Virus record (IMG/VR): IMGVR_UViG_3300047499_000113 | Location: 124,001 to 188,000 of that record | DNA length: 64,000 nucleotides | Reading direction: 5' to 3' (one strand) | Shown: positions 11,099 to 54,668 of the stretch, piece after piece | How the letters are laid out: each line of letters begins with the position of its first letter | Position numbering within the stretch: the first letter of the stretch is position 1 | Translations under genes and position numbers: made by a program | The notes under the pieces: model-generated | Seen by the model: only the letters and a program-made list of their open reading frames with translations | What the model was told of the DNA's origin: nothing | The model's database searches: none

Positions 11099-11123
11099 CG
11101 CTCGGATGAGCGATAAAAAGCCG

Positions 11124-12176
11124 CTATGGAAGGTCGTACACGGTCATCACGATATATTCGTACGGATTGCTGCCAGAGTTGATGCTCACGGTAGCTGGGG
11201 TGACCGTCGTCTGCTGCCACTGGAGCTGGATCGTATGGGAGGTTCCAGGCGTGTTGGCGATCACTTGGGCCCCGCTCAAGCTCTGCGATACACCAGCGTA
11301 ATCGGTCGTGCCAGTCGCGAGGATCTTCGTCTGCGTGGCCCCGTCGAGCGAGAATCCCACCGTTGCACCGTTCTGCACGGCGTCGGAATCGTACGAATAA
11401 TCGACTTGCACCAAAATACGGGTCCCGTTGAAAGTCTGAGTCGTCGTCATCCCGCCCAGGTCCGCCAGGGGTGCATGGGACGCGAGTTGGTAGTCGAACC
11501 CGGTCGCGACCGTGTAAACGGCAAGTACCCCGCCACCATTCGTACCTGCGGGACCAGTCGGACCTTGCGGACCAGTCGGACCTTGCGGCCCACCAGAAGG
11601 ACCAGTCGGACCTTGCGGCCCTACCGGTCCTGTAGCTCCTTGAGGTCCTGTAGCTCCATTTATGCCCGCAGGACCCGTTGCGCCTTGGGGTCCAGTCAAG
11701 CCATCGACGCCAGCCGGTCCAGTCGAACCCTGGGGGCCGGTAGTGCCATCAGCACCAGTCGGTCCCTGAGGGCCTGTTGCACTAGGACCGGTTGCTCCCG
11801 CAGGACCCACAGGACCTTGGGGGCCGATGGGACCCTGAGGACCGAAACCAGGAGGTCCCTGAGGACCGGGCGGGCCTATAGGACCAATGGGTCCAGGCGG
11901 GCCCGGAACGAACTGCACAGGCGCGGCCGAGCCCTGGGCCACCAGCTGAGCGGTGAAGGAATAGGTGAATTGTCCCGGGCTCTGATTGGCACCCGTCAGA
12001 ACGATGTTTGTGATGAACGTATTCGGCGCGTTGAGCTGCGAGTAGACTGCAGCCGCATTCCCAAACACGAAACCCATCGGATCGGGCAGCGCCTGATCCG
12101 ACACCACAATGATGCCGGCCGATATGACGGCCGGATTCGAACTAGGAGTCCGATTGGCGCTGATCGTGGTGCTCAC
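11124..12176 (-). CDS. Collagen-like protein (N-domain, ~100-aa Gly-X-Y segment, beta-rich C-domain)
   Basis: [16 protein letters not shown]...[10 protein letters not shown] between non-repetitive domains. Confidence 0.85.
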
Positions 12177-12649: not shown

Positions 12650-14059
12650 CTACTGCTGCTCTTGCTGGCCCTGATCCTGGCCTTCCTCTTCCTCGGATTC
12701 CTCTTCCTCGGGCTCTTCCGGAGCCTCGTAGTCCGGGGTCTCCTCTTCCAGTTCGGAGAGGTCGACCTCGTACTCGGGCAATCCCTCTTCCTCCTCGAGA
12801 GCGTCCTTGACCGCCTCGTAATCCTCGGTCTCCTCCGGGATCTCGTAGTCGGGCTCCTCGGCGGGCGGCTCGTAGTCGGGCTCGAGTTCGGAAAGATCGA
12901 CTTCGTACTCCGGGAATTCCTCTTCCTCTTCGGCCTCGGGCTCTTCGGCGGCCTCCGGTTCGAGACCTCCCTCAGGCTCTTCCTCCCAATCGATTTCGAT
13001 CTCGGGGTCTTCCTCCTCGAGGTCCTCGATGGGAACTTCCGCTTCTCCCTCGAGCCTGTCCCAATCCTCGTCGACAACGTCGAGGATTTCGTCCGAATCC
13101 TTGTCCCAGTTCTCGTCGACGATCTCCTCCATGAAGTCGTCGAGTCGCTTGAGGACCGAGTATGCGTGCTTGCACAGGAAGTATTTCCTGTCGGGATCGC
13201 GAACGTCCGGCGGCGCGGCCGTGCCGAATGGCTGGCCGAGCATGTATGAGTTTTGCGATGCGTGGAACTCCGGGCCGTTGTAACGCCAGAACGGACAGTC
13301 ACATGAGAGCGCGACCTTGTCCACGTCCGACAGCGACGCTTGGACCACGCGAGCACCATGACCGCAGTTGACCGAGAACGTAAAGATCCGGCTCTTCTTG
13401 TCGTAGCTCGTGAGCGAAACGCGGCAGCTCTGCGCGTTGCGCTTGATCTTCTCGGGAACTCTCGGCTCGAGTTCTTCCGGCTTCATCGCCTGACGTCGTG
13501 CCCGCCAGGGAAGCTCCAGCAGGGCTACCAGCTGGATCGAGGAGTGCCGAATCGGCTTCTCCTTGGTCCTGTACGGATAGTCCCAATACTGGGTGATGTC
13601 GACATCTTCGACGAATGTCGTGTCGGTCGGGGTCTGGATGTTCTCGTCGTACTGATATTCCTGGTGGTGAGTGACCGAGTCGGCCTCGCCGTCCTTCGTG
13701 TCGAAGATCGATCCGGGTTCCGAGGACGGAATCGTGGGCTCGTTGTCCTCGTACTTGAACGTCTTGGTTCCGAACCAGTCGGCCTCGTTCTCGCCACCGT
13801 CACCGAGTGGAGTGGCACCGTCCGCAAAACGCCGGCGCGCAATCCGACTCGCCAGATGGCGTCGAGATGCAACCTGGATCGTCTCGACCTTGATCGGAAT
13901 GAGGAAGAGAGGCTTGAGATGATCCGGAATCGCCGCCGCGAACGAGATGATGTCGGGATACACCTCCTGGCAAAGGAACGCGTACTGCGCTGCCTCGCTC
14001 AGGATGAATCCGTGCGGGAAATCCTTCTTGTCGGACGCCTGCTGCGAGTTGCGGATCAT
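12650..14059 (-). CDS. SWIM zinc-finger protein with very acidic C-terminal tail (probable virion/internal protein)
   Basis: LSCDCPFW...LCKHAYSVL is a CxC...CxH SWIM motif. Glu-rich tail with repeated PEYEVDLSELE. Confidence 0.7.
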   Translation of the reverse strand: MIRNSQQASDKKDFPHGFILSEAAQYAFLCQEVYPDIISFAAAIPDHLKPLFLIPIKVETIQVASRRHLASRIARRRFADGATPLGDGGENEADWFGTKTFKYEDNEPTIPSSEPGSIFDTKDGEADSVTHHQEYQYDENIQTPTDTTFVEDVDITQYWDYPYRTKEKPIRHSSIQLVALLELPWRARRQAMKPEELEPRVPEKIKRNAQSCRVSLTSYDKKSRIFTFSVNCGHGARVVQASLSDVDKVALSCDCPFWRYNGPEFHASQNSYMLGQPFGTAAPPDVRDPDRKYFLCKHAYSVLKRLDDFMEEIVDENWDKDSDEILDVVDEDWDRLEGEAEVPIEDLEEEDPEIEIDWEEEPEGGLEPEAAEEPEAEEEEEFPEYEVDLSELEPDYEPPAEEPDYEIPEETEDYEAVKDALEEEEGLPEYEVDLSELEEETPDYEAPEEPEEEESEEEEGQDQGQQEQQ

Positions 14060-16107: not shown

Positions 16108-16170
16108 AGTGCAAACTCCTTCGGGCTTGCACTATTGTACCGAAAAATTGCGCCAGTTGTTATAAAAAGG

Positions 16171-16578
16171 CTACCGAATAACCCGGCGGGGCGGCGCGCT
16201 GGTCACCACGTCCTGGTCCGATTCCTGCGGCTTCTTCGTGCCTGGCTCGCGCCGAAGTTCCGTGATGAACTCATCGACATCATGCTTGAGGCTGCGCAGA
16301 GCGGGGACGAGCTTGTCGGGCTCCTCGGTCTTGCGCACGAACTTCATCGCTTCCTCGACGTCCTTGCCCTCGTCGGTGTCCCAAATCGACAGCTCGACGT
16401 CATCGGCGGCGATGGAAAGTATTTCTCGAGCGACGCGCTCGATGCGCTGCTGACGACACAGCGCCGAAGCGAGGAGCTTCAGGTCTTGGCGGACGAGGGT
16501 GTTGCTGGGCTGCTCACTGGCGTCGATCTTGGTTGCAATTCGACGCAGAATAGAGGCTACCTTGTCCGGCGCGAGCAT
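16171..16578 (-). CDS. Small probable internal-head protein with VAxILRxIA...PS...V..DL module
   Basis: Start chosen at ATG 16578 (MLAPDKVASILRRIA), just downstream of the putative late motif. Module shared with the 24274-25230 protein. Confidence 0.65.
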   Translation of the reverse strand: MLAPDKVASILRRIATKIDASEQPSNTLVRQDLKLLASALCRQQRIERVAREILSIAADDVELSIWDTDEGKDVEEAMKFVRKTEEPDKLVPALRSLKHDVDEFITELRREPGTKKPQESDQDVVTSAPPRRVIR

Positions 16579-16638
16579 ACTTCCCTGGGGCATAAAAACC
16601 TACGTAAATGTCTGTTCGAATAAGGTACGAGGCGGCCA

Positions 16639-18636
16639 ATGCGGAAGCGTTTCTTCAAGTTCACAATCGGGGCGGTTCTATTCGTGATGCTCCTGTTCGT
16701 GGGCTTGTGGTTGGTAGCCCCCGTTTTCGCCAAGAACAAGGCAATCGAGCGGGCCCAAGCGATGGGCCTGACAATGACTGTGAACTCCGTGAATCACTCG
16801 GACGGCGGTTACCTGTTCGAAGGGATTCACATCAGCTCCAAAGAGCTGCCCATCGAAGCCGACATCGATCAAGCGATGGCGATTGTCGATGGATCGAAGC
16901 TGCGCGCTCTGACCGTCCACGGTGGGAAGGTCGTCGTCCACGGGAGAGTGTCCGAAGTCCGCGGTCAGTGGCAATCGTGGCGAGACAAACACCACGGCAA
17001 TGGCAGTGGTGAGAAGGCCGTCATTATGGCCGACAAACTCCAGCTCACGTGGCAGGCACCATGTGGCGGAGACGATGCTTCTGCTACAGGCGTTTCGGTC
17101 AACAACACGGACCTGGTCGTGCAAGCGAGCGATGTAACCGCAAGTTGCCTCGGGTGGAAAGCCCACTCCACTGACGTGAAGGCATCTTTGCAGAGTGTGG
17201 AAATCGGCAAGCTCGAGATTACGCGTTCCGGAGCAACAGGGCCAGCAACCACGTCACCCAGGAACCTCGACACCAGAGAGTTCCCCGTGCAGGGGTCCAT
17301 TCCAAACCTGGTCGTCAGAGAGCTGAACGTCGACGACAAGCCCCACACGCTCCACGCGAAGAACCTTGTGTTCCGCGGCGATTCCGACTCTGGCGACACG
17401 GCGTACACGAAGTTCTCCTTCGACGAGATGGAGGCTGACCTTCCGAAGGTTCACAAAGTGAGTCTCGGGAAGACTGGGACCGAGGGCTGGCTGAGTGACT
17501 TGTCGTCCGGCGGATACGCGCTCTTCTCCTTCACCGTGAAGTCGGATGGAGCCCGCGGCAAAGTGCAAGGCGTCACAGGCAATCGGGTGACCCTAGGGAC
17601 AACGGAGTTGGTCCTCGCAGGAAGCCTGCCTCCGGATTCTACGTGGAAGTCACCGCATGTTCTCTTCGACGAGAGAACCCACGTGAAAGTGGAAGAGGTG
17701 CAGGTCAACTTCAAGGGTGAGTGGAAACCCGGTCGACTGCAAGCTGACGTAGAACTCCCCGACACGGACTGCCAGAAACTCCTTGACGCGGTTCCAGCGG
17801 GAATGAACCGAGCCATCATGGGTTTGAAGATGAAGGGCTCGGCGGAAATGCAGCTCCACGTCGAGAAAGACGACAACCTCGCCGAACCCGTCGTGAAGCT
17901 CCACCTGTTCGATCACTGCAAGGTCACGAGTCCGCCGGATGGGGCTGACCGAGCCACACTGCGATCGAGCTTCATGCGTGTAGTGCAAGGCCCGATGGGA
18001 GAGGGTGTCGAAATCCCTACGGGACCAAGCTCAGGCAAATGGATGCCGCTGGGCGATATGTCACCCTTCCTCGTCGATGCCATCCAAGTGACGGAGGACC
18101 CGGGCTTCTTCGGTCACTACGGATTCGAGCCGTCCGCCATCGAGAACTCGCTCAAGACGGACATTTCGCTCGGTAGGTTCGCACGGGGCGCGAGCACGGT
18201 CACCATGCAGCTCGCCAAAAACCTGTGGTTGTCGCGCGAGAAGACCATCGCCAGGAAGATCCAGGAAGCCTTCCTCACCATCTACCTCGAGCAGACGCTC
18301 TCCAAGCAAGAGATTCTGGAGACGTACTTCAACGTCGTCGAGTTTGGACCGATGGTGTACGGCATCACGGACGCGGCCAACTTCTACTTCAATACTATTC
18401 CGTCCAACCTCACACTCTCGCAGGCGCTCTTCCTGTGCTCGATTCTACCCAACCCCAAGCAGAATTGGTTCGGGGCAGACGGGCAGCTGCAACCAGGTCG
18501 GCTCAAGTGGCTACAGACGCTCATGGTCGCACTCGAGCACCGTCATCTCATCACGCAGACGCAGTATGAAGAGGGCGTGACCGAGATTCCCGTTCGAGGA
18601 ATGCCGAAGCCGGCGCGTGCACTAGCGCTTGAATGA
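16639..18636 (+). CDS. Membrane-anchored monofunctional peptidoglycan transglycosylase (GT51, MtgA-like C-terminal domain)
   Basis: N-terminal TM helix. GT51 motifs TEDPGFFGHYG, GASTVTMQLAKNL, RKIQE, KQEILETYFN and YGITDAANFYF. No transpeptidase domain. Confidence 0.92.
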   Translation: MRKRFFKFTIGAVLFVMLLFVGLWLVAPVFAKNKAIERAQAMGLTMTVNSVNHSDGGYLFEGIHISSKELPIEADIDQAMAIVDGSKLRALTVHGGKVVVHGRVSEVRGQWQSWRDKHHGNGSGEKAVIMADKLQLTWQAPCGGDDASATGVSVNNTDLVVQASDVTASCLGWKAHSTDVKASLQSVEIGKLEITRSGATGPATTSPRNLDTREFPVQGSIPNLVVRELNVDDKPHTLHAKNLVFRGDSDSGDTAYTKFSFDEMEADLPKVHKVSLGKTGTEGWLSDLSSGGYALFSFTVKSDGARGKVQGVTGNRVTLGTTELVLAGSLPPDSTWKSPHVLFDERTHVKVEEVQVNFKGEWKPGRLQADVELPDTDCQKLLDAVPAGMNRAIMGLKMKGSAEMQLHVEKDDNLAEPVVKLHLFDHCKVTSPPDGADRATLRSSFMRVVQGPMGEGVEIPTGPSSGKWMPLGDMSPFLVDAIQVTEDPGFFGHYGFEPSAIENSLKTDISLGRFARGASTVTMQLAKNLWLSREKTIARKIQEAFLTIYLEQTLSKQEILETYFNVVEFGPMVYGITDAANFYFNTIPSNLTLSQALFLCSILPNPKQNWFGADGQLQPGRLKWLQTLMVALEHRHLITQTQYEEGVTEIPVRGMPKPARALALE

Positions 18637-19317
18637 GATCTTGCTCGGCTCCTTCGCATCCTCGATGAGACTATCGAGGTATGGAAGAACGTCCTTGTTG
18701 GGCGCGAGCTTGAAGGGACCGAGCCACTTCACCTCGGCATCGTCGAGCTTCTGGATCGACTCGTCCAGATTCAGAGGGTCGACCTTCGAAATGTCGAGGA
18801 ATCCGACCTCCGTAGGGTCGGCGAGCCGCTGCCGTTCCGGCAGGAACATATTTTCGGGACCGCTCGTGAAATGGATGGCCCGGAAGACGAACGTCCAGCG
18901 AGTATTCTTCGGCACCGGATAACCAGTGCGCATCTGGAATGCAACGCTGTGGCGCGAGATCGACTTGTCGAAATCGGGCATCAGCGCGAACGCGTAGCGC
19001 TTGTTCTTCTGCCGCAGGTGAAAGTGGAACCACTCGGTGGGCTTACCCTCGGCCCACATTTTGAGGTGCTCGACGATGTTGTCCGCATCCTTCATCAGGA
19101 AGACGGGTCGCATCTCGTAGTCGGTGTCCGACTTGACGTTGTGCTTGAACCAGAGACAAGCCTCGGCGGCTCCGCTCGGAAGCTGATCGAGGCCCTCCAT
19201 CAGCTCCGCGGTCCGCTCGGGCGGGATGAGCTGCATTGGGTCTCCCACCAGCAAGGGAACGTAGCTGATGAGGACGATGGACATCCCGGGCGACTTCTCG
19301 TCCTTGGGCTTACTCAC
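18622..19317 (-). CDS. Hypothetical protein
   Basis: 231 aa. TACTTT -10-like box 5 nt before the GTG. Confidence 0.7.
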   Translation of the reverse strand: MSKPKDEKSPGMSIVLISYVPLLVGDPMQLIPPERTAELMEGLDQLPSGAAEACLWFKHNVKSDTDYEMRPVFLMKDADNIVEHLKMWAEGKPTEWFHFHLRQKNKRYAFALMPDFDKSISRHSVAFQMRTGYPVPKNTRWTFVFRAIHFTSGPENMFLPERQRLADPTEVGFLDISKVDPLNLDESIQKLDDAEVKWLGPFKLAPNKDVLPYLDSLIEDAKEPSKISFKR

Positions 19318-19355
19318 CGCGGAAAGTACGCCGCCCGGGATCTGGACTTACGCGG

Positions 19356-20471
19356 TCAGGCCGCTTCTTCGGACTTGTCCCAATCCGGCACCTCGTACAG
19401 GAGCCTCGTGCCGGCGACCAGGGAGCGATTGGCCGAGGTCGACTGAACGAAGACCGCGTACTTCTCGAAACTCACCGGCTTGAGCTTCACGTCCTCCCGG
19501 TCTTCACCCTTGCGCTCGCTCTGCGGAGGAAGCTCGAGCATTTCGCGCACTTTGGCGCCGTTGAAGATGTCGCCCGTGGACTTGTCCATGAGCACGATCT
19601 CCTTGAAGCCCTGAACGGTCTCGGCCTTCGTCAGCTCGTAAAATCCGCGACCCTTGCGGAACTCGACGCCCTGATCGCGGACGAAGTCGGCGATGCCCTG
19701 CTTCTTGTCGACGGGCAGGATTTGGAACCTGCCGGCCGGAACCGCATGCAGCGAGGCGTCGCCGGCGGCGAACGCGGGCTTGCGACCCAGCAAGATCGAG
19801 ATGATCTTGTCCAGGTTGCGGTTCATGCGCTTGTCTTCCTTCAGCTCCTTCTCGAAGCCCTGGAGCTGCTCGTCGCCACCCTGCTTGTAGCAGACGGCCA
19901 TGATGAGGTCGTTGATGGTCGCGAACTGGTCGAGCGTCAGGTAGAATCCGCCAGTCTTCTTGGCGATCTCCTCGTAGAAGCTCTTGGAGTGCTTGCGGCA
20001 GCCCGGCATCGCGTGGACGCCGTAGACGTTGATGCCCGCCTCGAGCAGGAGTCCCAGCTCGTTGCGCCAGTCGATCTTCTTCTTGTTGTCCGGATACGTC
20101 GGTCCGTGCGGGACGTCGTCGCCGATCATCACCAGGACCTTCGACTTGCCCGAGGTCCACTTGAGAGTGCGCGCCTGGTGGAGCACCAGCTCGTAGCACT
20201 CCGGGGAGTCCCCTCCGCCCGTGGGCTCCACCTTGTCGATGAAAGACGTGACCTTCTTCACGTCGTCCGTCAGATCGAGGATCTTGGTGACGTACGAACT
20301 TCCAGCGTCGCAGTAGTCACCGTGAGCGATGACTCCCATCCGGAGCCCTTCGATGTCTCCGAAAAGCCGCTTGGCGGTGTCTTTGCAGTTTCGCCTCACC
20401 TGAGTGAGGCATGGGTACATAGACCCCGTGGTGTCGAACGTCAGGACCACATCGATCGAGGATTTGCCCAT
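19356..20471 (-). CDS. von Willebrand factor A (MIDAS) domain protein
   Basis: DVVLTFDTTGSM MIDAS motif, GGGDSPECYE and VMIGDDVPH. Start at ATG 20471 has a GGGAG RBS. Confidence 0.88.
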   Translation of the reverse strand: MGKSSIDVVLTFDTTGSMYPCLTQVRRNCKDTAKRLFGDIEGLRMGVIAHGDYCDAGSSYVTKILDLTDDVKKVTSFIDKVEPTGGGDSPECYELVLHQARTLKWTSGKSKVLVMIGDDVPHGPTYPDNKKKIDWRNELGLLLEAGINVYGVHAMPGCRKHSKSFYEEIAKKTGGFYLTLDQFATINDLIMAVCYKQGGDEQLQGFEKELKEDKRMNRNLDKIISILLGRKPAFAAGDASLHAVPAGRFQILPVDKKQGIADFVRDQGVEFRKGRGFYELTKAETVQGFKEIVLMDKSTGDIFNGAKVREMLELPPQSERKGEDREDVKLKPVSFEKYAVFVQSTSANRSLVAGTRLLYEVPDWDKSEEAA

Positions 20472-20519
20472 GCGGATACTCCCTTCTTGAAAGGGAGTGT
20501 ACAGGCGCACGGTCGAGAT

Positions 20520-21290
20520 CTACGCATTCGGGGCGGCCTGGGGAGCGATGTAGGCGCTGATATCCACGCCCGAAGAGTGGGCTCCCGTGGCCAGCTGGAT
20601 GGCCGTCGAACGCGCCGTGTCAGGGTCCATGCCCTGCGTCCGAAGGAAAATATAGAGGTTGAGCCAAGCCCCGTCCGCGTGACCGAAGTAGTGGTGCGCG
20701 TAGATCCCCGGCGCCAGGCTATTGCATGGCGCGTACGGACCCATCACTAGGGTGTTGCCGTTCAGGCCGCGAAATGTGAGGGGAATAGTCAGGTTGGACG
20801 CCGGCGTCAGCATCCAGAGTACCAGCTTGAAAACTGACTCTGCTTGCTCCGGTGTAGGGACCAGGTACTTGCCGCCGGCTGCCCAAGGAGCGTTGGTGAT
20901 GATGTCCTTCCACGGACTATTCTTGGGAGCCAAGCTGGGTTCGTAAGGGTTGACAGTCTCTATTCCGACTGACGGGCCATTGTGCTGGCTCCCATGCCAC
21001 AGCTCATCGGTCAGCAAATCCCCGTGCTGGTAGATGGTGCCGTCGTAGTCGGCGATGAAGTGGACACCGAGCCCACGGCCGCCAGGATTCGACGGCGACG
21101 ACGGCATCAGGACTTGTACGGTCTCTTGCCAACTCGACGTAACAGTCTCGTGCACCACCGCTTCGGTCACGGGACCAGTACGTTTCTGGTTGACGAACCT
21201 GTAGACCGAGGGGTCGGTGAAGTTCTTCAGGCGCACACCATCGGGCCCCTCGAGCGCAACCCCGTTGACGATGACACCAGCAGCAACCAT
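20520..21290 (-). CDS. N-acetylmuramoyl-L-alanine amidase (Amidase_2-type; endolysin or virion lysin)
   Basis: AVVHET, GVHFIADYDGTIYQ, WHG...NGPSVGIE and YAHH. The ORF-track N-terminus is the antisense of the 2H gene, so the start was set at 21290. Confidence 0.82.
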   Translation of the reverse strand: MVAAGVIVNGVALEGPDGVRLKNFTDPSVYRFVNQKRTGPVTEAVVHETVTSSWQETVQVLMPSSPSNPGGRGLGVHFIADYDGTIYQHGDLLTDELWHGSQHNGPSVGIETVNPYEPSLAPKNSPWKDIITNAPWAAGGKYLVPTPEQAESVFKLVLWMLTPASNLTIPLTFRGLNGNTLVMGPYAPCNSLAPGIYAHHYFGHADGAWLNLYIFLRTQGMDPDTARSTAIQLATGAHSSGVDISAYIAPQAAPNA

Positions 21291-21332
21291 CACAGCCAAA
21301 ATGGGTATCGGACCTTTATCACGGGCGGAGAC

Positions 21333-21842
21333 GTGGCGTTCATAGGGATGCGGCTGCCATCGATCGCAGCGACCAATCTTTCGGAGATTCCCGTCCCCGG
21401 CGAAGCGACACCACTGCGTGAAATGCATGTGACGTTGGCTTTCTTGGGAAACCAAGTGCCGATGGAGCAGGTATTCCGGTCCCTCGCGTGCTGCTACCTG
21501 GTTGCGCAGGAGTACGCACCTCTCGAGCTGACTGCAGCACTGTTGATGAGCTTTCCGGCCGACCCGGAAGGGCGAATCCCGGTCATCGCTCGAATAGTGA
21601 CCCCGCAGCTCTTCGACATGAGAGCGCGTTTGGTCCAGTTGCTTGAAATGAATAAGGTGGAGTATTCCAAGCGCCACCCGCAGTACAAACCACATGTGAC
21701 GCTGTCGTACGCGCAGCAGGCAGTGCCACCGCAGAAGATCAAACCGCTACGCTGGCCGGCACAGTGGCTCACAGTGTGGGGCGGCGACGAAGCGGATCAG
21801 CTTTTCTCTGCGGAAATAGAACTCCGCGGGCAGAAACGCTGA
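21333..21842 (+). CDS. 2H phosphoesterase (LigT/ThpR or Acb1-like)
   Basis: Two HxT motifs, MHVTLAFLG and YKPHVTLSY, about 80 aa apart. Start uncertain (GTG 21333 or ATG 21348). Confidence 0.88.
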   Translation: MAFIGMRLPSIAATNLSEIPVPGEATPLREMHVTLAFLGNQVPMEQVFRSLACCYLVAQEYAPLELTAALLMSFPADPEGRIPVIARIVTPQLFDMRARLVQLLEMNKVEYSKRHPQYKPHVTLSYAQQAVPPQKIKPLRWPAQWLTVWGGDEADQLFSAEIELRGQKR

Positions 21843-21854
21843 CGCTCTTATCCC

Positions 21855-22097
21855 GTGTTGTGGCGAATGGCTGCAACAGCCAAACGCTCAGTTGCCAAGA
21901 CGATCGCCTCGATAGAGAGGCAAGGCGGCCTGCTCCTTCCGTGTGGGTGCGTGATAGGCGTGGAACTTGGCGGCATGCGAAGGCTCGTGGAAACCGTTGG
22001 ACCAGAGCCTGTGGTAGAAATCTTCCGCGACATCCAGTGCGCTATCCATCCACGTCGAATTCGCAGACGCGCGAAATCACGTCCGGCTAGTCCGTAA
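21855..22097 (+). CDS. Hypothetical small protein
   Basis: 80-aa ORF with LPCGC...C motif; start uncertain. Confidence 0.5.
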   Translation: MLWRMAATAKRSVAKTIASIERQGGLLLPCGCVIGVELGGMRRLVETVGPEPVVEIFRDIQCAIHPRRIRRRAKSRPASP

Positions 22098-22128
22098 GCT
22101 TCAGGCGTGTTGATGTAATGATCTGAAG

Positions 22129-22371
22129 ATGGGCGAGCTGAACGGGTGGACGAAACTCGGCGATAAGGTCGAGGGCAACGGCAAGTGGCGTCTTTTGAGG
22201 CACGGAGGCAAAACCTTCGATACCTTGAAGCCCAAGGGTGAGTGGCCGCCGGAGCAAGCCGAAAAGGCCACGCGCGAGTACCAGAAGCTGGCCGAAAACG
22301 TGAATATCGGCGGCTTGTGGCTTGTGGCTCCAGACGGCACAGTCGCCGCTCTCATCTTCCGCAATCGCTAG
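22129..22371 (+). CDS. Hypothetical small protein
   Basis: 80-aa ORF filling the gap with plausible codon use. Confidence 0.6.
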   Translation: MGELNGWTKLGDKVEGNGKWRLLRHGGKTFDTLKPKGEWPPEQAEKATREYQKLAENVNIGGLWLVAPDGTVAALIFRNR

Positions 22372-23081
22372 GCGTTCATCAGGTCTTCGACAAGGAATTC
22401 CTTCCAGGCTCGATGGAAGTCGTCCTCTTCGAGGAGTCCCGGAGGGATGTTCTTTTTGAGGAAAGCGACGAGTTCACCCGTGTACTTCATGCGGTGTTTC
22501 TCGCGGAACGCTTCGATGGCTTTGTCGAGCACGTGCTCGCGCTGAGCCTCCGTCCGAGCGTCGCGCACGGTCAGGTTAATGGAATCCTGCACCTTGTACA
22601 GGACTTCGTTGCTGACCATTTTGTTCAAGATCTCGAACGCCGCTTTCTTGCTCAGAAGCACCTGGATGGACACCTTGGACTTGAACGAGTCGAAGAGTCG
22701 ATCGACAACACCGGACGCGTAGTCTTGGAAGCTCTTGGCCTTGATGCGACCCTTGTGATGCGACGTCTTGATTATCGCGTAGACATGCAGGTCGGCGACG
22801 ATGCGCTTCTCCGAGTTCAAGCGCACGTCGGTCTGAACTGAAGGTGCCACGACCTGAGCGTCCGCAAGCTGACGAGCGAACACCGCAAAGTTGGGCTCGA
22901 GCTGCTCCATGTAAACGATCGATTCCGCGTCTTTGCACAGAGCTGGATAAATAAGCCGGTACGCTGTCTGCATGCGCTTGTCTGCTTGGAGAGCAAGCAC
23001 CTGCACGAGCTGCTGACGGAGATCGACCGCCGCGGCCAGGACATCAATGAACCTCTGGCGAGCGTAATCTAGTGTATGCAC
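22368..23081 (-). CDS. Hypothetical protein with C-terminal tag (AWKEFLVEDLMNA)
   Basis: 237 aa. The C-terminus matches the shared VxxVMES-type motif. Confidence 0.7.
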   Translation of the reverse strand: MHTLDYARQRFIDVLAAAVDLRQQLVQVLALQADKRMQTAYRLIYPALCKDAESIVYMEQLEPNFAVFARQLADAQVVAPSVQTDVRLNSEKRIVADLHVYAIIKTSHHKGRIKAKSFQDYASGVVDRLFDSFKSKVSIQVLLSKKAAFEILNKMVSNEVLYKVQDSINLTVRDARTEAQREHVLDKAIEAFREKHRMKYTGELVAFLKKNIPPGLLEEDDFHRAWKEFLVEDLMNA

Positions 23082-23642
23082 GATCTTCCCGAGAAGGAGT
23101 TACGCGAGACCCTACAGCAGCTACGTGATACTGAACAAGTCGTCCGGCTGGCAGTGGACGACGGCCTCGGAGAGAGCATGTTTCCTGGTCTCGTCAGTGC
23201 CATCGAGGGACGCCCAGCATCCGCCAAGGCCATTGCGAACGAGATAGGAACGGATTCTATCTTTCTCGGGATGATGCTCCAGGAGAAGACCAAGGCGCAG
23301 GTGCTCCAGATCGTGCAGCAGACTCTTGCGCGCGGGGAGAAGATCCTCGCTGACAAAGTGAAGCCCGACGACCGCGAAGAGGTCCTCGCCGGCGAGAACT
23401 TTGGCGTGGTGTTCATGCCACCAGAGCTGCTGCGCCAGCTATGGGGCCTCGGAGAGGCGGTTGTGCACTTTCAGGAAGGGAAGAGCGAATCCAAGCGCGT
23501 GGAGCCACGAGCCATCAACGTGATGATGCTCGCCGCGCAGTGGGTTCGCGACGCCAGAACACGTTGGGGACTCCCCGACAGAGTAGAGAAGGTAGAGGTG
23601 GCTCCCCTATTGAAAGAGCCGCCCATGGAGCCGCCGTTCTAG
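23076..23642 (+). CDS. Hypothetical protein
   Basis: 188 aa. TAATCT 5 nt before the ATG. Confidence 0.7.
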   Translation: MHDLPEKELRETLQQLRDTEQVVRLAVDDGLGESMFPGLVSAIEGRPASAKAIANEIGTDSIFLGMMLQEKTKAQVLQIVQQTLARGEKILADKVKPDDREEVLAGENFGVVFMPPELLRQLWGLGEAVVHFQEGKSESKRVEPRAINVMMLAAQWVRDARTRWGLPDRVEKVEVAPLLKEPPMEPPF

Positions 23643-23953
23643 TGGATCTGCATCCGAATGGGCCGCAGGTTCTGCTTGACCTGGTCCATCTTATCCTCAA
23701 GCAATTCCCGCCGATCAGTCACTTCCTCATGGTGCATAGTCACGAGCTTGAGGATGGTCTCGAGAGCAGAATATGCGCCCTCGAGGAGCTTCACGGCTCG
23801 TTGTGGGTTGTCGCGTGAGGCCGCCTGAGTGAGAAGGTCGAGCTGACGCTTCAACTGCGTAATGATTTCTTCGACTTTGTCCGACTCGATGGGCGTGTCC
23901 TCTTCGGGGTCACCAGCAGCTACACGCGCGGCGATTTGCAGGAACCGGCCCAT
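23639..23953 (-). CDS. Small helical protein with N-terminal IAARVAA motif (probable internal head protein)
   Basis: Begins MGRFLQIAARVAAGDPEED. Confidence 0.7.
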   Translation of the reverse strand: MGRFLQIAARVAAGDPEEDTPIESDKVEEIITQLKRQLDLLTQAASRDNPQRAVKLLEGAYSALETILKLVTMHHEEVTDRRELLEDKMDQVKQNLRPIRMQIH

Positions 23954-24017
23954 CGGGGTATACTACTCTTGGACACAAAGGGTCGGAAATACGACCAGGT
24001 GGATAGTATCGAGGGAC

Positions 24018-24287
24018 ATGCGCAAAATCCCCATGCTCAAGTCGGTGCCTCTGGCTCCGAAGGTGTCGGTCGGGGTGCGCCGGCTCGCCGAGGGTTTGTA
24101 CAGGGTCCTTCTCGAGGACCTGACTCAGCGCCAAGCCTCCTACTTCGAAGTTGGAACCCTGCGCGACGGCGCCCTGACAGTCGGCGCCAATCCGCGGGGC
24201 CAAGCGGCAGTCAAGATGCCGGAGTTTCCGGCGGCGATTCAGGAGCTTTCGGACTTCACGACCGTTGACACGGTCATGTCAGAATAG
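24018..24287 (+). CDS. Hypothetical protein with C-terminal tag (DFTTVDTVMSE)
   Basis: Start set at ATG 24018 (GAGG upstream) to avoid overlap with the 23953 gene. Confidence 0.6.
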   Translation: MRKIPMLKSVPLAPKVSVGVRRLAEGLYRVLLEDLTQRQASYFEVGTLRDGALTVGANPRGQAAVKMPEFPAAIQELSDFTTVDTVMSE

Positions 24288-25230
24288 CGATCACTGACTC
24301 GAGATCCGCAGTCACCGCGGCAATGGACGGGCGGGAAGCCTGCTCCACGTTGTTCGCGATGATACGCAGGATGTCGGCCACCGAAGACGGTCCAGCCGAC
24401 AGTTTCGTCTTCTTCGGGTCGAAGGTCATGCCCGTGTCTTTGAGCTGCTGCAGAAGCTCGCCCTTCTTCGAAGCTCGCTCAGCGGGCGACTTGAACATGC
24501 CCTTCGCGAGCATGTCGAGATCCGGCGGACCGAACACGCCGTCGTTCTCGTCGACCATGTGATCGTAGAACGATTCGATGGAGCTGTACGGCCCCGAAAG
24601 GTCCGCCTTCTCTTGCTCGAGCTGCTTCTCGCCCTTCTGGCGAACTTGCTGCTGCTCCTTGTACTTCTGGACCTTCTTCTGCACCGCCTTCGATTTGGAC
24701 TCGAAAGGCGGGTGAGCGACAATGTGCTGGACGAGGTCTTGGACGCCGGCGCCTACGCGTCCGAAGTCCTGCTCCTGCCCAGTGTCCTCGTCCTTGGTCC
24801 AGCTCGGATTGCCCTTCGCATCGAAGTTGATGTCGTAGGTACCGAGGTCGGTCTCCATCGAATACTTGCCCTCGCCAGACGCGCCGGGCAACTTGTGGTA
24901 ATATCCGACCTCAAGGTGGACAGTGTTGGCCTCTCCGGGCTTCGGATTGACGGCAAGGTTTCCCTTGACCAGCAGGCCACCGAGGATGCCGTTGTTGCTC
25001 AGCTCCGAGGGCTTCCCCGGGAAGGAGAAGTTCAGGCCGCTCCAGCCGAAGCCTGCAGACGGGTCTTCTCCGCGAGTGTCCCACTGCCAGTCGATGCCCG
25101 GCACGACTGCATCGACAAGTGGCCTCACGAGGTCTGAAATGGAGACCGCAGTCTCCTTGCTCATGGACACGATCTCGTCGGCCAGGCGCAGACGAGTATA
25201 CGTCGCGGCGAGTTTCTCCCAAACGGGCAT
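24274..25230 (-). CDS. Probable internal head protein with C-terminal VAxILRxIA...PS...V..DL module
   Basis: 318 aa. TAGGCTGTTTAT motif upstream. Module shared with 16171-16578. Confidence 0.7.
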   Translation of the reverse strand: MPVWEKLAATYTRLRLADEIVSMSKETAVSISDLVRPLVDAVVPGIDWQWDTRGEDPSAGFGWSGLNFSFPGKPSELSNNGILGGLLVKGNLAVNPKPGEANTVHLEVGYYHKLPGASGEGKYSMETDLGTYDINFDAKGNPSWTKDEDTGQEQDFGRVGAGVQDLVQHIVAHPPFESKSKAVQKKVQKYKEQQQVRQKGEKQLEQEKADLSGPYSSIESFYDHMVDENDGVFGPPDLDMLAKGMFKSPAERASKKGELLQQLKDTGMTFDPKKTKLSAGPSSVADILRIIANNVEQASRPSIAAVTADLESVIAILT

Positions 25231-25243
25231 ATCCCCGCAGGAG

Positions 25244-25255
25244 ATAAACAGCCTA
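25244..25255 (-). promoter_or_regulatory. Putative phage late-promoter motif TAGGCTGTTTAT (representative copy)
   Basis: Near-identical copies precede many virion genes (54643-54654, 55593-55604, 44162-44173, 12191-12202, 11113-11124 and others). Confidence 0.55.
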
Positions 25256-25789
25256 GGTCAGGTCGACGAGCTGGAAGTACCGAGACGGAACGTGGTCGGT
25301 GAGCCAGACTCCGTTGGTCGACAGGAAGAACTTGTAGCCGTCACGGAACATCTGGTCTGTCCAAATCTCGAGAACTATCGGGTTGCGACGACGCCGAGCC
25401 ACGATGAGGGCAGTCTTCACGTCCGGAGACATGTGGACGTGGTGACGCTGCATCTTCTTCAGGCCCTCTTGCTCGAGAACATCGAGGATGTCCTTCGACG
25501 TGCCGTGATACAGGCAATCCGGTGGTTCCTTCTCTTCGTACTCGAGGTCGACTTCCACCGAATGACCCTGGCAGGCACGAATGCGAGTCTTGTCCTCGTT
25601 GAATTCGAACCGCTTCTTGTTGTTGTCGCGAACGACCGCCTCGAGGTCGTCCATTGACCATTTCATCGCCGGCAGGAGCGCAGCGACTTCGACCCATCCA
25701 GCCGAATCGAGCGTGAGGCCGACGCTCTCGGGCTGATGGCGGAGCACCAGGCTCAGATGCTTGCTCTTGTGGACGAGAGGGTCTTTCAT
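25253..25789 (-). CDS. kptA: RNA 2'-phosphotransferase (KptA/Tpt1)
   Basis: SKHLSLVLRH, NNKKRF, RIRACQGHS, LYHGT, GLKKMQRHHVHMS and NGVWLTDHVP are the canonical Tpt1 motifs. Confidence 0.95.
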   Translation of the reverse strand: MKDPLVHKSKHLSLVLRHQPESVGLTLDSAGWVEVAALLPAMKWSMDDLEAVVRDNNKKRFEFNEDKTRIRACQGHSVEVDLEYEEKEPPDCLYHGTSKDILDVLEQEGLKKMQRHHVHMSPDVKTALIVARRRRNPIVLEIWTDQMFRDGYKFFLSTNGVWLTDHVPSRYFQLVDLT

Positions 25790-27799: not shown

Positions 27800-28090
27800 T
27801 TACAAGGCAGGGCCGGCGATTTCCCAACCCTTGTCGGCCTTGCGCAGGAAATGTAGCCCCTCGACGGGTACATCGTTCACGGATTCGATGCCGACCTCGA
27901 GGTCATCCTTGGTTTTGGGGATGTCGTTGGGGTAGGCGGGCTCTTTGAAGAGCTTGACTTTATGCTGACCGAGGAGACTGCGAACGTGATCGACGTTGTG
28001 CGCCTCGGCCAGAGCCTGATTGACCGTTTCGAATCCCGGCGACTGCGCGGCGACGCGAGATGCAATCGCAAAGAGCCGCTTCTGATTCAT
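27800..28090 (-). CDS. Small protein with N-terminal IASRVAA motif (probable internal head protein)
   Basis: Begins MNQKRLFAIASRVAAQ. GGGCTTCTAT motif and AGGA upstream. Confidence 0.7.
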   Translation of the reverse strand: MNQKRLFAIASRVAAQSPGFETVNQALAEAHNVDHVRSLLGQHKVKLFKEPAYPNDIPKTKDDLEVGIESVNDVPVEGLHFLRKADKGWEIAGPAL

Positions 28091-32190: not shown

Positions 32191-33081
32191 TCAGCGCGCG
32201 ACGATCAGGCGCACCAGGCCGCGGGGGTTGTACGCCCCGATGCCAAGGTTCTCGAACATTGAGAAACCTATTGTCCGCTCCTCGGGGTTGTCGGCCGAGA
32301 GAACCGTCAGCTCCGTGCGGACCGGGATGCGACCGAAGTGCTCCGGCTCACACGTGATGTAGACGACGCCGGCGGCGACGAGGCGGCTGACGATGAACTG
32401 GGCGTTCCAGCCCGTCGCCATCATGCCCGTCTTCCACAGCGTGGCCTGGCTCTCGATGTCGAGCACGTCGCGCCCGAACTTGCGGATGTCCGCGTAGTCG
32501 GTCGCGTTCATGTAGACGCGAGCGACGCGGAGGTCCTGCCGCTCGATCTCGGCGAACGCGTCCGCGAGAACGGCCGGAGAGATCGGAGCGATGACGGGGA
32601 CGTCGGGGTTGGTCTGCCCCGGCAGCTCGTCGAAGCCGTTGACGGCGAGCGCGTCCATGATGGAGAAGACGCGGTCGTCTTCTGCCGCCTGGACCTGCGC
32701 CTTGCCGAGGTCCTGCATACGCTTGAGGAGGTCGTACCGACGCTCCTTGATCTGCGTGAGCGGGGCCTTGGGCAGGGCGGCGATCTCGAAGAGCGGGAAG
32801 ATCACGCGCCGCGGCTTCATGACCGCGGTGATGCTCTCGCCCTCCTCACCGATGACGTACGCGGTGACATCCGGATCCTTGTCGTAGATCGGGAGAGCAC
32901 CGTCGGGCAGCTGCTCGACCAGGAAGGTCTTGCGACCCACGGACGAGTAGTCGCGCCGCTCGCGGAGCGGCTGGATCATGGACGCCGCGAGGCGCTTGCG
33001 ACCAGCCGAAGAGCCGATGAACTTGTCGACGACCTGCTCCTTGATCGTGTTGTCGACAACCTGAACGCCGAAGGGATTCAT
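32191..33081 (-). CDS. Major capsid protein (short HK97-fold type)
   Basis: 296 aa, extreme GC3 bias, terminator downstream, last in the protease-scaffold-decoration order. GRKRLAASMIQPLR...DY...GRK.FLVEQLPDGA.P.YD resembles, from memory, capsids of Bxz1/Myrna-like large myoviruses. Confidence 0.85.
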   Translation of the reverse strand: MNPFGVQVVDNTIKEQVVDKFIGSSAGRKRLAASMIQPLRERRDYSSVGRKTFLVEQLPDGALPIYDKDPDVTAYVIGEEGESITAVMKPRRVIFPLFEIAALPKAPLTQIKERRYDLLKRMQDLGKAQVQAAEDDRVFSIMDALAVNGFDELPGQTNPDVPVIAPISPAVLADAFAEIERQDLRVARVYMNATDYADIRKFGRDVLDIESQATLWKTGMMATGWNAQFIVSRLVAAGVVYITCEPEHFGRIPVRTELTVLSADNPEERTIGFSMFENLGIGAYNPRGLVRLIVAR

Positions 33082-34021: not shown

Positions 34022-35488
34022 TCACGGACGGTCCCAGAGGTTCTCCAGGGCCTGGTCGACCGACGCGGGCTTGCCGCGCTGGACCTGACCGATCTTCTTG
34101 GCGCCCTTCACGGAAGCCGTGCGGCCGACCGAGAAGTTGCCCATCTCGCGAGCGTGCTGCTCCTGCTCCGCAGCCTTGATCTGGCGCTGAGCCTGAACTT
34201 CCTCGTTGTCGCCGAAGAGGTTGTCCAGCTCGTCGCCATGCGAGGCCACGGCAGCCGCCGTGACGCCAGCCGGAGTCGCCTGGAGTTCGTCCTCCTCGTC
34301 GAAGGAGATGTCGGGCTGCGCACCCGTCGCGGTCGCCATCACCGGAGCGACAGGAGCCGCCGGTGCGGGAGCCGCCTCGAAGAGGGCCTGGAGGTCGTCG
34401 CCCGCGGGCACGCCCTGCTGACCCATCTCCTCCTTCAGCATCTGATCGAGCATCTGAAGCTCGGCAGGCGGAAGGTCGCCGCCCATGTGCGGCATGCCCA
34501 TCTCCTGCTGCTCCTCCTGCTCCTGGCCCTGCTGTTGCTGCTGGCCCATCATCGGATGCTGTGCCTGCTGCTCCTGCTGGCCCATCATCTGCTGCTGACC
34601 CTGCTGTTGCTGCTGGCCACGTTGCTGCTGCTGGCCCTGCTGCTCCTGCTGGGACTGCTGCTGCTGACCCTGCTGTTGCTGCTGCTGGGAGGTCTTGCCC
34701 TGCTGCTGCTCCTCCTCTTCCTCTTGCTGCTGCGCGACGCGAGCCGCAGCAACCTGCTTGAGGACAGACTTGAGGGTCGGGTCGTCGATCGTCATGATCG
34801 TCGACGCCAGCTGCTCGAGGGCCCGGTCAGCCGCCGACTCGCCGATGAGGAGAGCCGCAAGCTTGGTGCACGCCATCGCGCGGCGCGTCTTGTTCTCCGG
34901 CGTCAGCGCGTCGGGAGACACGGCGTCGAGGGCGCGGAGGGTCGAGACGACGACGCGGTCGGGCATCCCCATGAAGCCCATCGCCACTTCCTCGACGATC
35001 TTGTCGTTCGAGGTGCGCAGCATGGCACGGGTGATGCGCTCGACTGCCTTGGCCTTCTGCTCGGCCATGGCGCGCGGGTCAGCCGCAGTGGCAGGACGAC
35101 CAGCCGCCTCGTAGGTGCGACCAGCCTTCTCGCCCTGGGACTTGCCGGACGTGTTGCCCGAGAACGTCCCGGTGCCGTCCGGCTTGACGTTGTCGTACGT
35201 CCCCTTGCCCGAGTGCCAGTTGTCGGAGTCCTTGTGCTTGAAGGTGTTGTCGCGGAACTCGGCGAAGTTCAGCTCGTTCCGCTTGACGTGACCGCCCTCG
35301 TACTCCGCCTCGACATCACCGTAGCCGTGCCAGGACTCGGCCCAGCTGTCCGGGTCGCCCGACTCGTAGTCGGTCGGCTTGGGATCCGGGTGCTCCTGGT
35401 TCATCTTGTAGATGTCGGCTTGGCGTTGCGTCGCCGCCTGACGCGAGGTCGCGGCACCGTTGCCCTGCCAGGTGGAACGCGTACGCAT
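34022..35488 (-). CDS. Probable scaffolding protein with poly-Gln/Glu tract
   Basis: Sits between protease and decoration/capsid genes. AGGAG RBS before ATG 35488. Helical, low-complexity, ends ALENLWDRP. Confidence 0.65.
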   Translation of the reverse strand: MRTRSTWQGNGAATSRQAATQRQADIYKMNQEHPDPKPTDYESGDPDSWAESWHGYGDVEAEYEGGHVKRNELNFAEFRDNTFKHKDSDNWHSGKGTYDNVKPDGTGTFSGNTSGKSQGEKAGRTYEAAGRPATAADPRAMAEQKAKAVERITRAMLRTSNDKIVEEVAMGFMGMPDRVVVSTLRALDAVSPDALTPENKTRRAMACTKLAALLIGESAADRALEQLASTIMTIDDPTLKSVLKQVAAARVAQQQEEEEEQQQGKTSQQQQQQGQQQQSQQEQQGQQQQRGQQQQQGQQQMMGQQEQQAQHPMMGQQQQQGQEQEEQQEMGMPHMGGDLPPAELQMLDQMLKEEMGQQGVPAGDDLQALFEAAPAPAAPVAPVMATATGAQPDISFDEEDELQATPAGVTAAAVASHGDELDNLFGDNEEVQAQRQIKAAEQEQHAREMGNFSVGRTASVKGAKKIGQVQRGKPASVDQALENLWDRP

Positions 35489-35525
35489 GTGGGAGTCTCC
35501 TGCTTCTTGGTCTTCTATCAAGGTC

Positions 35526-39138: not shown

Positions 39139-40113
39139 TCAGCGGCCGGTCAGCTTGTAGATGACGGGCAGAAGCTTCGGCCGCAGAGCCGGACGAGCGT
39201 GTGCGTACCGGATGAAGATGCGCGCAGCCTTGATCTTGGCCGCGGCGAGTTCTGCCCGCTCCTCGTGAAGGAACGGCTTGACCTGGTTGAACAGCTCCTT
39301 GAGGAGCTTGACCGTCTTGCCCTCATCACCGGCGGCCTCCTGGAGGGACTCGCCGTACTGCGAGACGAGCATGCTGAGCTGCTCGGGAGAAGGCTTCTTG
39401 CCCTCCGGCTTCTTCTCCGGCTTCATCCCCTCTTCGGTGATCTCGATCTTTGGAGCCGGCTCGAGGAGATGCTCGCGGATGCCCTTCGCGAGGTTCTTGC
39501 CCTTGCGAATGAGGACTTCGACCTTCTTGAGGATGTCCTGGATGAGGCGCTTGTTCGGCTTGCGACGGGCCTCTTCCATCTCGGCCAGGATCTTCTCGAC
39601 GCCACCGAAATACGCGGCGTTCTCCTTGGCCTCCTCGTTGATGTAGTGCTCAGGATCCGCCCACTCACGCTTTCCCTCGATGAACTCGTCCATCGCGGAC
39701 TCGTCCATTTGGTACGACGGAGCGTTGGCCTTCATGTCTTCGGCCTGCTCCTCGAGCTTCTTCTGCGTGGGCTTGAAGACGTCCTTGAACTTCTTGAAGA
39801 AATCCTTGATGCCCGCGGTCGTCGAAACCTTCTTGAGCATCTGGCGGAGTTCTTCTTCCTCCGCCTCGGCCGCGTCCTCGAAGAACTTCGCGAATTCCTT
39901 CGCGTCCTCGGTGTCGAGCATCTTGAGCGCGTCTTCGAGTTCGTCCTTGAGGGACTCAAGGACAGTGATGCTGTTCTCGAGGCTCTGCTCCCACTTCTTG
40001 GCGCCCGGATTGATGACGGCAATCGCCTGGCGCTCCAGCTCGTAGCCGAGCAGAGGGTTGTACTGGCCAATTTGACGCGCCAGCTTCACCCGGCGCCATA
40101 CGGCGCGACTCAT
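39139..40113 (-). CDS. Probable internal head protein (helical, Glu/Lys-rich) with RxAHAxPxxRPxLLP module
   Basis: Start at ATG 40113 (MSRAVWRRVKLA), overlapping the upstream stop. Confidence 0.7.
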   Translation of the reverse strand: MSRAVWRRVKLARQIGQYNPLLGYELERQAIAVINPGAKKWEQSLENSITVLESLKDELEDALKMLDTEDAKEFAKFFEDAAEAEEEELRQMLKKVSTTAGIKDFFKKFKDVFKPTQKKLEEQAEDMKANAPSYQMDESAMDEFIEGKREWADPEHYINEEAKENAAYFGGVEKILAEMEEARRKPNKRLIQDILKKVEVLIRKGKNLAKGIREHLLEPAPKIEITEEGMKPEKKPEGKKPSPEQLSMLVSQYGESLQEAAGDEGKTVKLLKELFNQVKPFLHEERAELAAAKIKAARIFIRYAHARPALRPKLLPVIYKLTGR

Positions 40114-44139: not shown

Positions 44140-44177
44140 GCAAGCTCTGCCTAGACGGCTTATGGAAAGCCTACCGA

Positions 44178-46473: not shown

Positions 46474-46733
46474 TACTTGGCGCGTGCCACCCTGGAAGCG
46501 ATGCTAGCAAGGCGACGGTTGTTGACGAATGCGTCAATTGCATCCTCGATGATCTTGACGCATCCCATGTCGCCACCCATGAGACGTTCCCAGGAGCCTC
46601 CGCGGGCCGCGTAGTCGTGGAATATCTTGACGAAGTCCTCGTTGGAGAGTTTGGTATCCGGCCCGTACACGTGATCCGTGATCTGCCGCACGATCTTGTA
46701 GGCAGTCGTGTCCTTGACGCCGGGCTCTTTCAT
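46473..46733 (-). CDS. Small protein with C-terminal IASRVA motif
   Basis: Ends NRRLASIASRVARAK. Confidence 0.65.
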   Translation of the reverse strand: MKEPGVKDTTAYKIVRQITDHVYGPDTKLSNEDFVKIFHDYAARGGSWERLMGGDMGCVKIIEDAIDAFVNNRRLASIASRVARAK

Positions 46734-48707: not shown

Positions 48708-48709
48708 GA

Positions 48710-54617: not shown

Positions 54618-54668
54618 GTCTCACCCTTTGCAAGGCATGCCAATGAACAGCCTAGGAGTGTCCGAGGG

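Follow-up and report, generated by a model that had tools for sequence, protein, structure and literature searches.

The capsid-targeting sequence of phage T4, carried by IPI, IPII, IPIII and Alt, is about ten residues long, strictly N-terminal and cut by the prohead protease at a glutamate site. The scaffolding protein of phage P22 ends in a helix-turn-helix, a small and mostly basic hairpin that binds coat. Encapsulin cargo-loading peptides are terminal tags that bring varied cargo inside an HK97-fold shell; they are short, unstructured and usually C-terminal, with a Gly/Ser/Leu motif. In polymorphic toxins, including the MuF fusions of phage heads, a conserved N-terminal trafficking domain is joined to many unrelated C-terminal domains. 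The T4 internal proteins are a highly diverse set, encoded in variable gene arrays, that share only the capsid-targeting sequence, which loads them into the scaffolding core of the prohead and suffices for this on its own (PMC3012670). Here we analyse a segment of about 40 residues, the module, found at the N-terminus of one small protein (A) and the C-terminus of another (B). Both are encoded in a window of 64,000 nucleotides, positions 124001-188000 of the single 240,015-bp viral contig IMGVR_UViG_3300047499_000113 from IMG/VR; coordinates marked "genome" refer to the whole contig.

Like the T4 sequence, the module is a conserved tag on unrelated small proteins (the parts joined to it are related in only 28 of 5151 pairs), it occurs in arrays of up to five genes, and in relatives the tagged genes occupy comparable positions in the head operon. 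It differs in its length of 40-45 positions and its two helices, in its C-terminal, internal and double copies, and in having no conserved cleavage residue after it. The two are not related in sequence. Given its length, its freedom from a strictly N-terminal position and the lack of a cleavage site, we rejected it as a member of the T4 class.

The likeness to the P22 coat-binding domain lies in a predicted terminal helix-loop-helix of similar size (35-40 residues). However, the module matches the solved domain neither in sequence nor in fold, its charge is not conserved, and it stands mostly N-terminally on hundreds of non-scaffold proteins. In contrast to encapsulin peptides it is helical, 40 aa long, mostly N-terminal and without Gly/Ser/Leu features. 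On these differences we rejected the P22 hairpin and the encapsulin peptide as its class. As in polymorphic toxins, a conserved N-terminal element has recombined with unrelated cargo, but no toxin domains were recognised in the cargo, no immunity genes are paired with the carriers next door, and MuF is a far larger domain.

A segment common to proteins A and B

The original prediction, made from the letters of the window, had aligned a 37-residue core in A with one in B and judged the rest of the two proteins unrelated. The genes and segments lie where it placed them (Table 1). The last 39 residues of B and residues 8-46 of A form an ungapped alignment, with 14 of 39 identical (26.9 bits; E 1e-4 as a single comparison), the 37-residue core in A being window 16459-16569. 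Nothing beyond this segment aligns between the two proteins. One of 2000 shuffles of B reached the observed Smith-Waterman score. We called 220 genes on the contig and used them as the phage proteome for similarity statistics; among them A and B are each other's best non-self match, at E 0.025 and 0.056, and an all-against-all comparison places the pair at about rank 59. With such E values and such a rank, the raw pair is suggestive rather than decisive.

Conservation of the segment within the two families settles, at the level of sequence, that the similarity is real. It is kept in 16 A-family and 4 B-family metagenome proteins, none of the 16 A homologs being annotated, and when the two family alignments were compared with hhalign this segment alone matched (probability 93.2%, E 2.9e-7). 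A hidden Markov model (HMM) built from the two copies found a third, full-length and ungapped, in the same genome but outside the window (genome 102044-102166, minus strand), in a protein that we call C. A chance resemblance of two helical segments would suit the raw pair, with its E of 0.025 against the phage's own proteome and its rank of about 59, but it is refuted by conservation in both families, the profile-profile match, the third copy and the wide spread described below, and we give it practically no credence. A candidate fourth copy, as yet unproven, lies in the gene at genome 47363-48184, where a degenerate pattern (P-x4-V-x3-IA...RP-x4-V-x2-DL) is matched weakly by A and B and not at all by the large profile.

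This large profile, 45 positions built from 20 copies, was scored against 1.84 billion representative proteins. The profile search that had been proposed as a check on the original prediction returned many further instances, clearly the opposite of the outcome named as refuting it: besides the third genome copy, 877 clusters (at 50% identity) match at E ≤ 1e-3, and 33 reach E ≤ 1e-10. The positions that hardly vary are P4, L11, R12, I14, A15, I18, S21, P24, V29, D32 and L/I33, and the pattern reads P-x2-[VI]-[AS]-x2-L-R-x-I-A-x2-I-[DE]-x-S-x2-P-x4-V-x2-D-[LI].

Statistics of placement, length and family models were taken from the 144 best profile matches. The carriers are small (median length 134 aa), and the module usually follows directly after the start methionine, although it is sometimes C-terminal or double. 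It lies at residues 1-40 only in 110 of the 144, at both ends in 11, at the N-terminus plus an internal site in 9 and at an internal site only in 10; two copies are present in 20. No model of Pfam-A, PHROGs v4 or NCBIfam 20 matches more than three of the 144 carriers. Isolated modules gave only scattered matches to family models at E > 0.004, with nothing consistent even at E 10, and a PDB sequence search gave no match better than E 0.08. Profile scans of Virus Rctr197k, LR745208.1 and Tunturi_5 found no module. The ESM Atlas held nothing usable for B or for the module, and B has no Pfam or PHROG match. Judged by its sequence, the module is a widespread protein family new to Pfam, PHROGs, NCBIfam and PDB.

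The AlphaFold2 model of A is all-helical (predicted local distance difference test, pLDDT, 65), with a helix at residues 9-25, a loop at 26-30 and a second helix from 31; the five-residue turn falls at the conserved D-x-S-x-x-P. For a natural mini-protein that consists of two modules joined by an Ala/Pro linker, the model shows two helix-loop-helix units (H3-19/H25-41 and H66-82/H88-102; helix pLDDT about 80, predicted template modelling score, pTM, 0.54). On these two models, the helical hairpin proposed in the original prediction holds. Fold searches with A and the mini-protein returned generic helical matches only (Foldseek E > 0.7; VIA Z ≤ 6.2).

The second half of the profile is also matched by P0109, a TPR_12-type metagenome protein, in five to six repeats ('...KIDEAS.GPDHP.VARDLNNLA...') that score 7-13 bits each. 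The sequence pattern resembles that of a single TPR unit, by common origin or by convergence. We rejected the module as a TPR repeat proper: it occurs in one or two copies with disordered linkers and matches no TPR model in Pfam.

A portable tag and a shorter peptide of similar pattern

The segment behaves as a self-contained helix-turn-helix terminal tag of about 40 residues and not as part of a fold. One case is B itself. Its syntenic ortholog P0220 stands beside Tpt1 in a related phage of about 445 kb, and the P0220 body aligns to residues 20-270 of B (E 2e-13). P0220 carries the module at residues 2-36 and has none at its C-terminus, whereas B carries it at the C-terminus. The 5151 pairs above come from 102 proteins whose single module is N-terminal; their median module identity is 50%, and even pairs with modules at least 80% identical have related cargo in only 1 of 44. 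As the module is found at both N- and C-termini, switches ends between syntenic orthologs and is joined to cargo so rarely related, the portable docking module of the original prediction is well supported by its distribution.

The same picture comes from a set of 70 metagenome loci (500 kb) that a narrow alignment of the module retrieved. They hold 136 copies of the module, 120 of them N-terminal and 8 C-terminal, and 38 of the 70 loci hold two or more; a single 202-kb contig contributes at least four separate loci. The arrays are runs of up to five consecutive small genes on the same strand, each opening with the module.

A shorter tag accompanies the module. Protein C and most of its 50-odd relatives open with the peptide M-x-L-L-x-I-A-A-R-V-A, and helix 1 of the module in C (IRLVAARLANS) has the same pattern. 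At least seven proteins of the contig have this IAARVA peptide N-terminally and two have it C-terminally, and it is terminal in 9 of 12 credible cases (binomial P about 9e-6). B joins the two kinds of tag, its layout being a degenerate IAARVA-type N-terminal peptide, a beta-rich body, a K/Q/E-rich linker and the C-terminal module; its relatives P0003 and P0004 likewise have an N-terminal IAARVA peptide and a C-terminal module.

Among orthologs, one tag can stand in for the other. P0085 and P0216 have full modules, whereas their homolog at genome 73426-74463 has two IAARVA peptides, and the N-terminal peptide of P0003 and P0004 stands where the syntenic ortholog P0220 has the module. Both also lead genes in the same arrays: four consecutive small genes on a 1.8-kb contig are led by module, module, peptide and peptide, and L016 has mixed arrays of module-led and IAARVA-led small genes.

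On the contig the peptide reaches into the head operon, where it is found in an 86-aa, an 887-aa and a 499-aa protein (Table 1). The 887-aa protein has Q/E-rich acidic runs and a very basic C-terminal tail with GGKKAPPF repeats, and a homolog stands at the same position in the relative L104; position and composition make it a candidate prohead-core or ejection protein. Compared with the 'DNA ejection protein' and the scaffold-position protein of Tunturi_5, neither it nor the 499-aa protein showed detectable similarity. Q/E-rich runs recur in head-operon proteins and C family alike, and the motif SQ[QE]E is concentrated in both; it was considered as a candidate protease site, but it may be a simple low-complexity linker.

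Two further observations concern these families. Protein C and its relatives P0023-P0074 are mosaics in which Q/E-rich linkers of the 'SQQE' type connect short interchangeable pieces: the IAARVA peptide, a two-Cys core of about 45 aa (KGKGYCVKS...WSGGCY...RLxQVExFKH), an optional module, an 'APPGW...NPFALAWYMKNKG' tail, a 'GDKRSYGSF...DLGIPHYYAG' domain and DUF5661. The 887-aa protein and a 425-aa protein share a C-terminal motif, h-x-R-h-A-H-x-x-P-x-x-R-x-x-L-L-P-h-I (BLAST E 0.008), which is retained in L104.

A proposed head link and its rivals

The contig, about 56% complete by CheckV, is that of a tailed phage, as judged from its predicted terminase, portal, prohead protease, major head protein and tail sheath. 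In the relatives L104, L085 and L083, with major head proteins 91-92% identical, module genes lie between the portal gene and an intein-bearing prohead protease gene. In L104 the genes run from terminase and portal through homologs of the 887-aa and 182-aa proteins, a zinc-ribbon protein, a module-led 151-aa protein and the 425-aa homolog, which opens with an IAARVA-type peptide, to the intein-bearing protease and then the major head protein. Directly before the protease in L085 and L083 come two module carriers, one with the module internally and the other a repeat protein with one at each end. The prohead-core genes 67 and 68 of T4 have the corresponding place, between portal and protease.

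The nearest deposited records are Virus Rctr197k and LR745208.1, an unannotated 485-kb uncultured phage with a major head protein 75% identical to that of the contig. Of the 220 contig genes LR745208.1 has 45, most of them for the shell of the virion, the protease, portal, terminase and tail. It lacks both kinds of tag, module and IAARVA peptide, and it has homologs neither of the Q/E-rich head-operon proteins nor of A, B and C. As LR745208.1 keeps the shell without the tags, the tags travel with the variable internal proteins and not with the shell. This co-variation points to the variable core, rather than the shell, as the probable partner of the tag; together with the gene order in L104, L085 and L083 it would place the partner among the Q/E-rich core proteins and away from shell, portal and protease.

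The reading that we favour, while holding that it could equally well prove right or wrong, is that the module is a docking tag for the prohead core that acts regardless of its position, in the manner of the T4 capsid-targeting sequence but without belonging to that class. The hairpin, at either end of a protein, would bring unrelated proteins to one common partner, most likely the scaffold or internal core of the assembling prohead, and the tagged proteins would be packed into the capsid. The hh-x-IAARVA peptide, similar to the first helix of the module, would serve the same purpose. We infer the binding, the identity of the partner and the resulting encapsidation from gene context and distribution. 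Of the two functions originally predicted, prohead incorporation draws on the head-operon context of the IAARVA peptide and, in relatives, of module genes, while its binding part stays conjectural; oligomerisation is weakly suggested by modelling.

Several observations weigh against a role in the prohead core. A and B have RNA-repair and cell-wall genes as neighbours and are 7-16 kb away from the head operon, and many of the arrays in relatives stand beside a block of tail-sheath and actin-like genes and not in the head operon. Some proteins consist only of module, linker and module, with no cargo to deliver. The columns after the module hold no conserved residue or protease site, unlike the T4 sequence. 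A tblastn search with A, B, C and a consensus-like module found no match in 50,697 deposited phage records. Finally, the contact that was predicted is between tags and not between tag and capsid: residues 1-66 of A with residues 268-318 of B gave an ipSAE interface score of 0.33 (best control 0.00), within the range of 0.60 or under that contains only 7 of 80 solved complexes and both of the mismatched pairs that passed, so that such low passes are more often wrong. The ipSAE mark itself was reached by 58 of the 80 solved complexes and 2 of 110 mismatched pairs. The runs agreed in at least 98% of contacts, with a partner pLDDT of at least 64, and a weak pairing of tag with tag is possible on this model.

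Such a pairing could be the whole function. Hairpins might associate as four-helix bundles, so that tagged proteins form dimers or networks without any specific tie to the capsid. The proteins with two modules, including those with nothing else, fit this explanation, as do the A-B model and the four confident helices predicted for a module-linker-module protein despite its disordered linker; the Ala-rich amphipathic helix 1 would suit tight helix packing. However, the complex prediction is weak, the fold searches gave only the generic helical matches described above, and simple dimerisation leaves the extreme N-terminal preference, the hypervariable-cargo arrays and the head-operon positions unexplained. 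We think it unlikely that generic self-association accounts for the module, and it would be compatible with docking in the prohead core if the core co-assembles through tag-tag contacts. A tag that docks to some other phage structure, such as filaments of an actin-like protein or another compartment, seems improbable. The phage encodes an actin homolog of the Volactin family (Pfam PF25216, E 2.6e-73), protein C and several of the module arrays found in relatives lie in the same gene block as this homolog, and tandem modules on flexible linkers would recall multivalent filament binders; yet LR745208.1 retains the actin-like gene (52% identical) without the module, and module genes are also found inside head operons.

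Two further explanations appear very improbable, and to a similar degree. The module could be a nucleic-acid-binding helix-turn-helix of the SAP/HeH kind that tethers proteins to phage DNA, and indeed internal head proteins are often DNA-binding, and the consensus module, two helices around a short loop, has a strongly basic charge of about +6. This charge is not a constant feature, though, the copy in B being net acidic; Pfam gave no helix-turn-helix, SAP or HeH match even at E 10, and the conserved positions are mostly hydrophobic faces and the turn. The module could also be a leader or recognition peptide for processing, export or turnover, whether the leader of a ribosomally synthesised and post-translationally modified peptide (RiPP), a secretion signal or a site for a chaperone or protease. 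A conserved N-terminal stretch of about 40 aa followed by hypervariable parts in arrays is RiPP-precursor architecture too, and a radical SAM gene lies near protein C, but this gene is among sugar-modification genes. The cargo is 50-300 aa long and mostly looks like folded domains, neither a conserved cleavage motif after the module nor the hydrophobic core of a signal peptide was seen, and the module is also C-terminal, internal and on large structural-operon proteins. As a RiPP leader specifically it was rejected on the length of the carriers (the median given above, with a maximum of several hundred residues), the lack of a junction motif and the C-terminal copies.

Genomic setting and biological meaning

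The original prediction placed a putative late motif before both genes. B has TAGGCTGTTTAT 14-25 nt upstream of its start, and this part is borne out; A has only a variant, one base shorter. A promoter-like motif of the TAGGCTTTTTAT type is probably the late motif that was meant. With up to two mismatches it occurs five times in the window, where 0.71 matches are expected, each time on the minus strand and 14-55 nt upstream of a gene start. Gene A probably starts at its second ATG, at 16578, which gives 135 aa, because its homologs open with 'MSPDKVA' and the promoter-like motif overlaps the first ATG. This start puts the module two residues past the methionine, as in the A homologs.

Table 1. 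Positions of the module copies, IAARVA-bearing genes, motif matches and landmark genes
Feature	Position	Strand	Basis or remark
Gene A, small all-helical protein, module at N-terminus	window 16171-16593	-	open reading frame, 140 aa from first ATG
Module copy 1 (in A)	window 16444-16578	-	profile positions 1-45; HMM match 85 bits, E 8e-25; translation checked
Gene B, 318 aa, module at C-terminus	window 24274-25230	-	open reading frame; 4 family members
Module copy 2 (last 41 residues of B)	window 24277-24399	-	HMM match 57 bits, E 4e-16; translation checked
Protein C, 227 aa, third module copy	genome 101783-102463	-	two-copy HMM
104-aa gene beside B, IAARVA-type start	window 23639-23953 (tag 23912-23944)	-	tag HMM match at residues 4-14
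96-aa gene, IAARVA-type start	window 27800-28090 (tag 28046-28078)	-	related-phage homolog with same N-terminus
86-aa gene between TerL and portal, IAARVA-type C-terminus	window 46473-46733 (tag 46482-46514)	-	tag HMM match
887-aa protein just downstream of portal, IAARVA at aa 66-75	window 41476-44139 (tag 43915-43944)	-	tag HMM match
499-aa Q/E-rich protein, internal AARVAQQQ	window 34022-35521	-	between protease and major head protein (scaffold position)
425-aa protein	window 39139-40416	-	
469-aa protein	window 12650-14059	-	SWIM zinc finger, Pfam E 6e-4
Tpt1/KptA RNA 2'-phosphotransferase	window 25253-25789	-	Pfam E 4e-50
Terminase large subunit (TerL)	window 46758-48740	-	PHROG TerL, E 3e-26
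Portal protein	window 44178-45971	-	PHROG portal, E 2e-26
Prohead protease gene with intein	window 35526-38330	-	PHROG head maturation protease, weak match; homologs 61-76% identical in relatives' head operons
Major head protein	window 32191-33081	-	tblastn, 36% identity to Bacillus phage G major head protein, E 3e-55
Promoter-like motif, TAGGCTTTTTAT type, upstream of gene B	window 25244-25255	-	
TAGGCTTTTTAT matches	window 11113-11124, 16162-16173, 25244-25255, 44162-44173, 54643-54654	-	motif scan
Volactin-family gene	genome 95654-96688 (L010:15654-16688)	-	between protein C's gene block and tail sheath
Tail sheath, 1939 aa	genome 86830-92649	-	outside window; PHROG E 2e-25, in last ~340 residues only

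The surroundings of A and B include a transglycosylase, a vWA protein, an amidase-like gene and Tpt1. The position of A beside the transglycosylase gene is conserved in relatives; a locus search with the A family found only the contig's own twin in IMG/VR and nothing in species genomes. Also conserved beside A in relatives is a gene block that includes the 469-aa protein, which has an IAARVA-like LASRIARR at about residue 70, the zinc finger and an extremely acidic tail of about 120 residues. Tpt1 lies directly upstream of B, a pairing conserved in the related phage, and genes for a 2',5'-RNA ligase (Acb1-like) and PTH2 are nearby in relatives. Together, Tpt1, the Acb1-like ligase and PTH2 suggest an RNA-repair or counter-defence set.

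Elsewhere on the contig, most other genes have no match in Pfam or PHROGs. The major head protein is 46% identical to that of Tunturiibacter phage Tunturi_5 (tblastn). The protease intein has Hint domains and a LAGLIDADG homing endonuclease (Pfam LAGLIDADG_3, E 1.4e-13) and is retained in L085 and L104; a second intein-like region is common to the protease gene and a 1361-aa gene at genome 199219-203304 (BLAST E 9e-7). The Volactin-family gene is conserved in relatives, with an intein inside it in L021. The tail sheath has a region of about 370 aa in common with a 2080-aa gene at genome 31874-38116. Window 103-5928 and genome 118407-129928 (minus strand) contain a family of about 12 paralogs (lowest BLAST E 3e-9), in a stretch with a G+C of 0.67-0.69 compared with about 0.60 elsewhere.

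A more general version of the prohead-core reading, which we put forward tentatively and regard as somewhat doubtful, is that hairpin and IAARVA peptide form a general cargo-loading code with which a clade of uncultivated huge phages (about 240-450 kb) packs a large set of fast-changing small proteins into the capsid and ejects them into the host together with the DNA. If so, the more than 800 tagged clusters would be a catalogue of ejected effectors, for example anti-defence or host-takeover proteins, that could be read from sequence.

If the tag does load heads, a scan with a 40-residue profile would predict the packaged and ejected proteins of huge phages that cannot be cultured. The logic of T4, a shared label on a diverse arsenal, would have been reinvented with a structured label usable at either end of a protein, and the module would be a candidate handle for packing foreign proteins into large capsids. 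Whatever its function, the module brings order to much of this clade's dark proteome by dividing it into tag and cargo.

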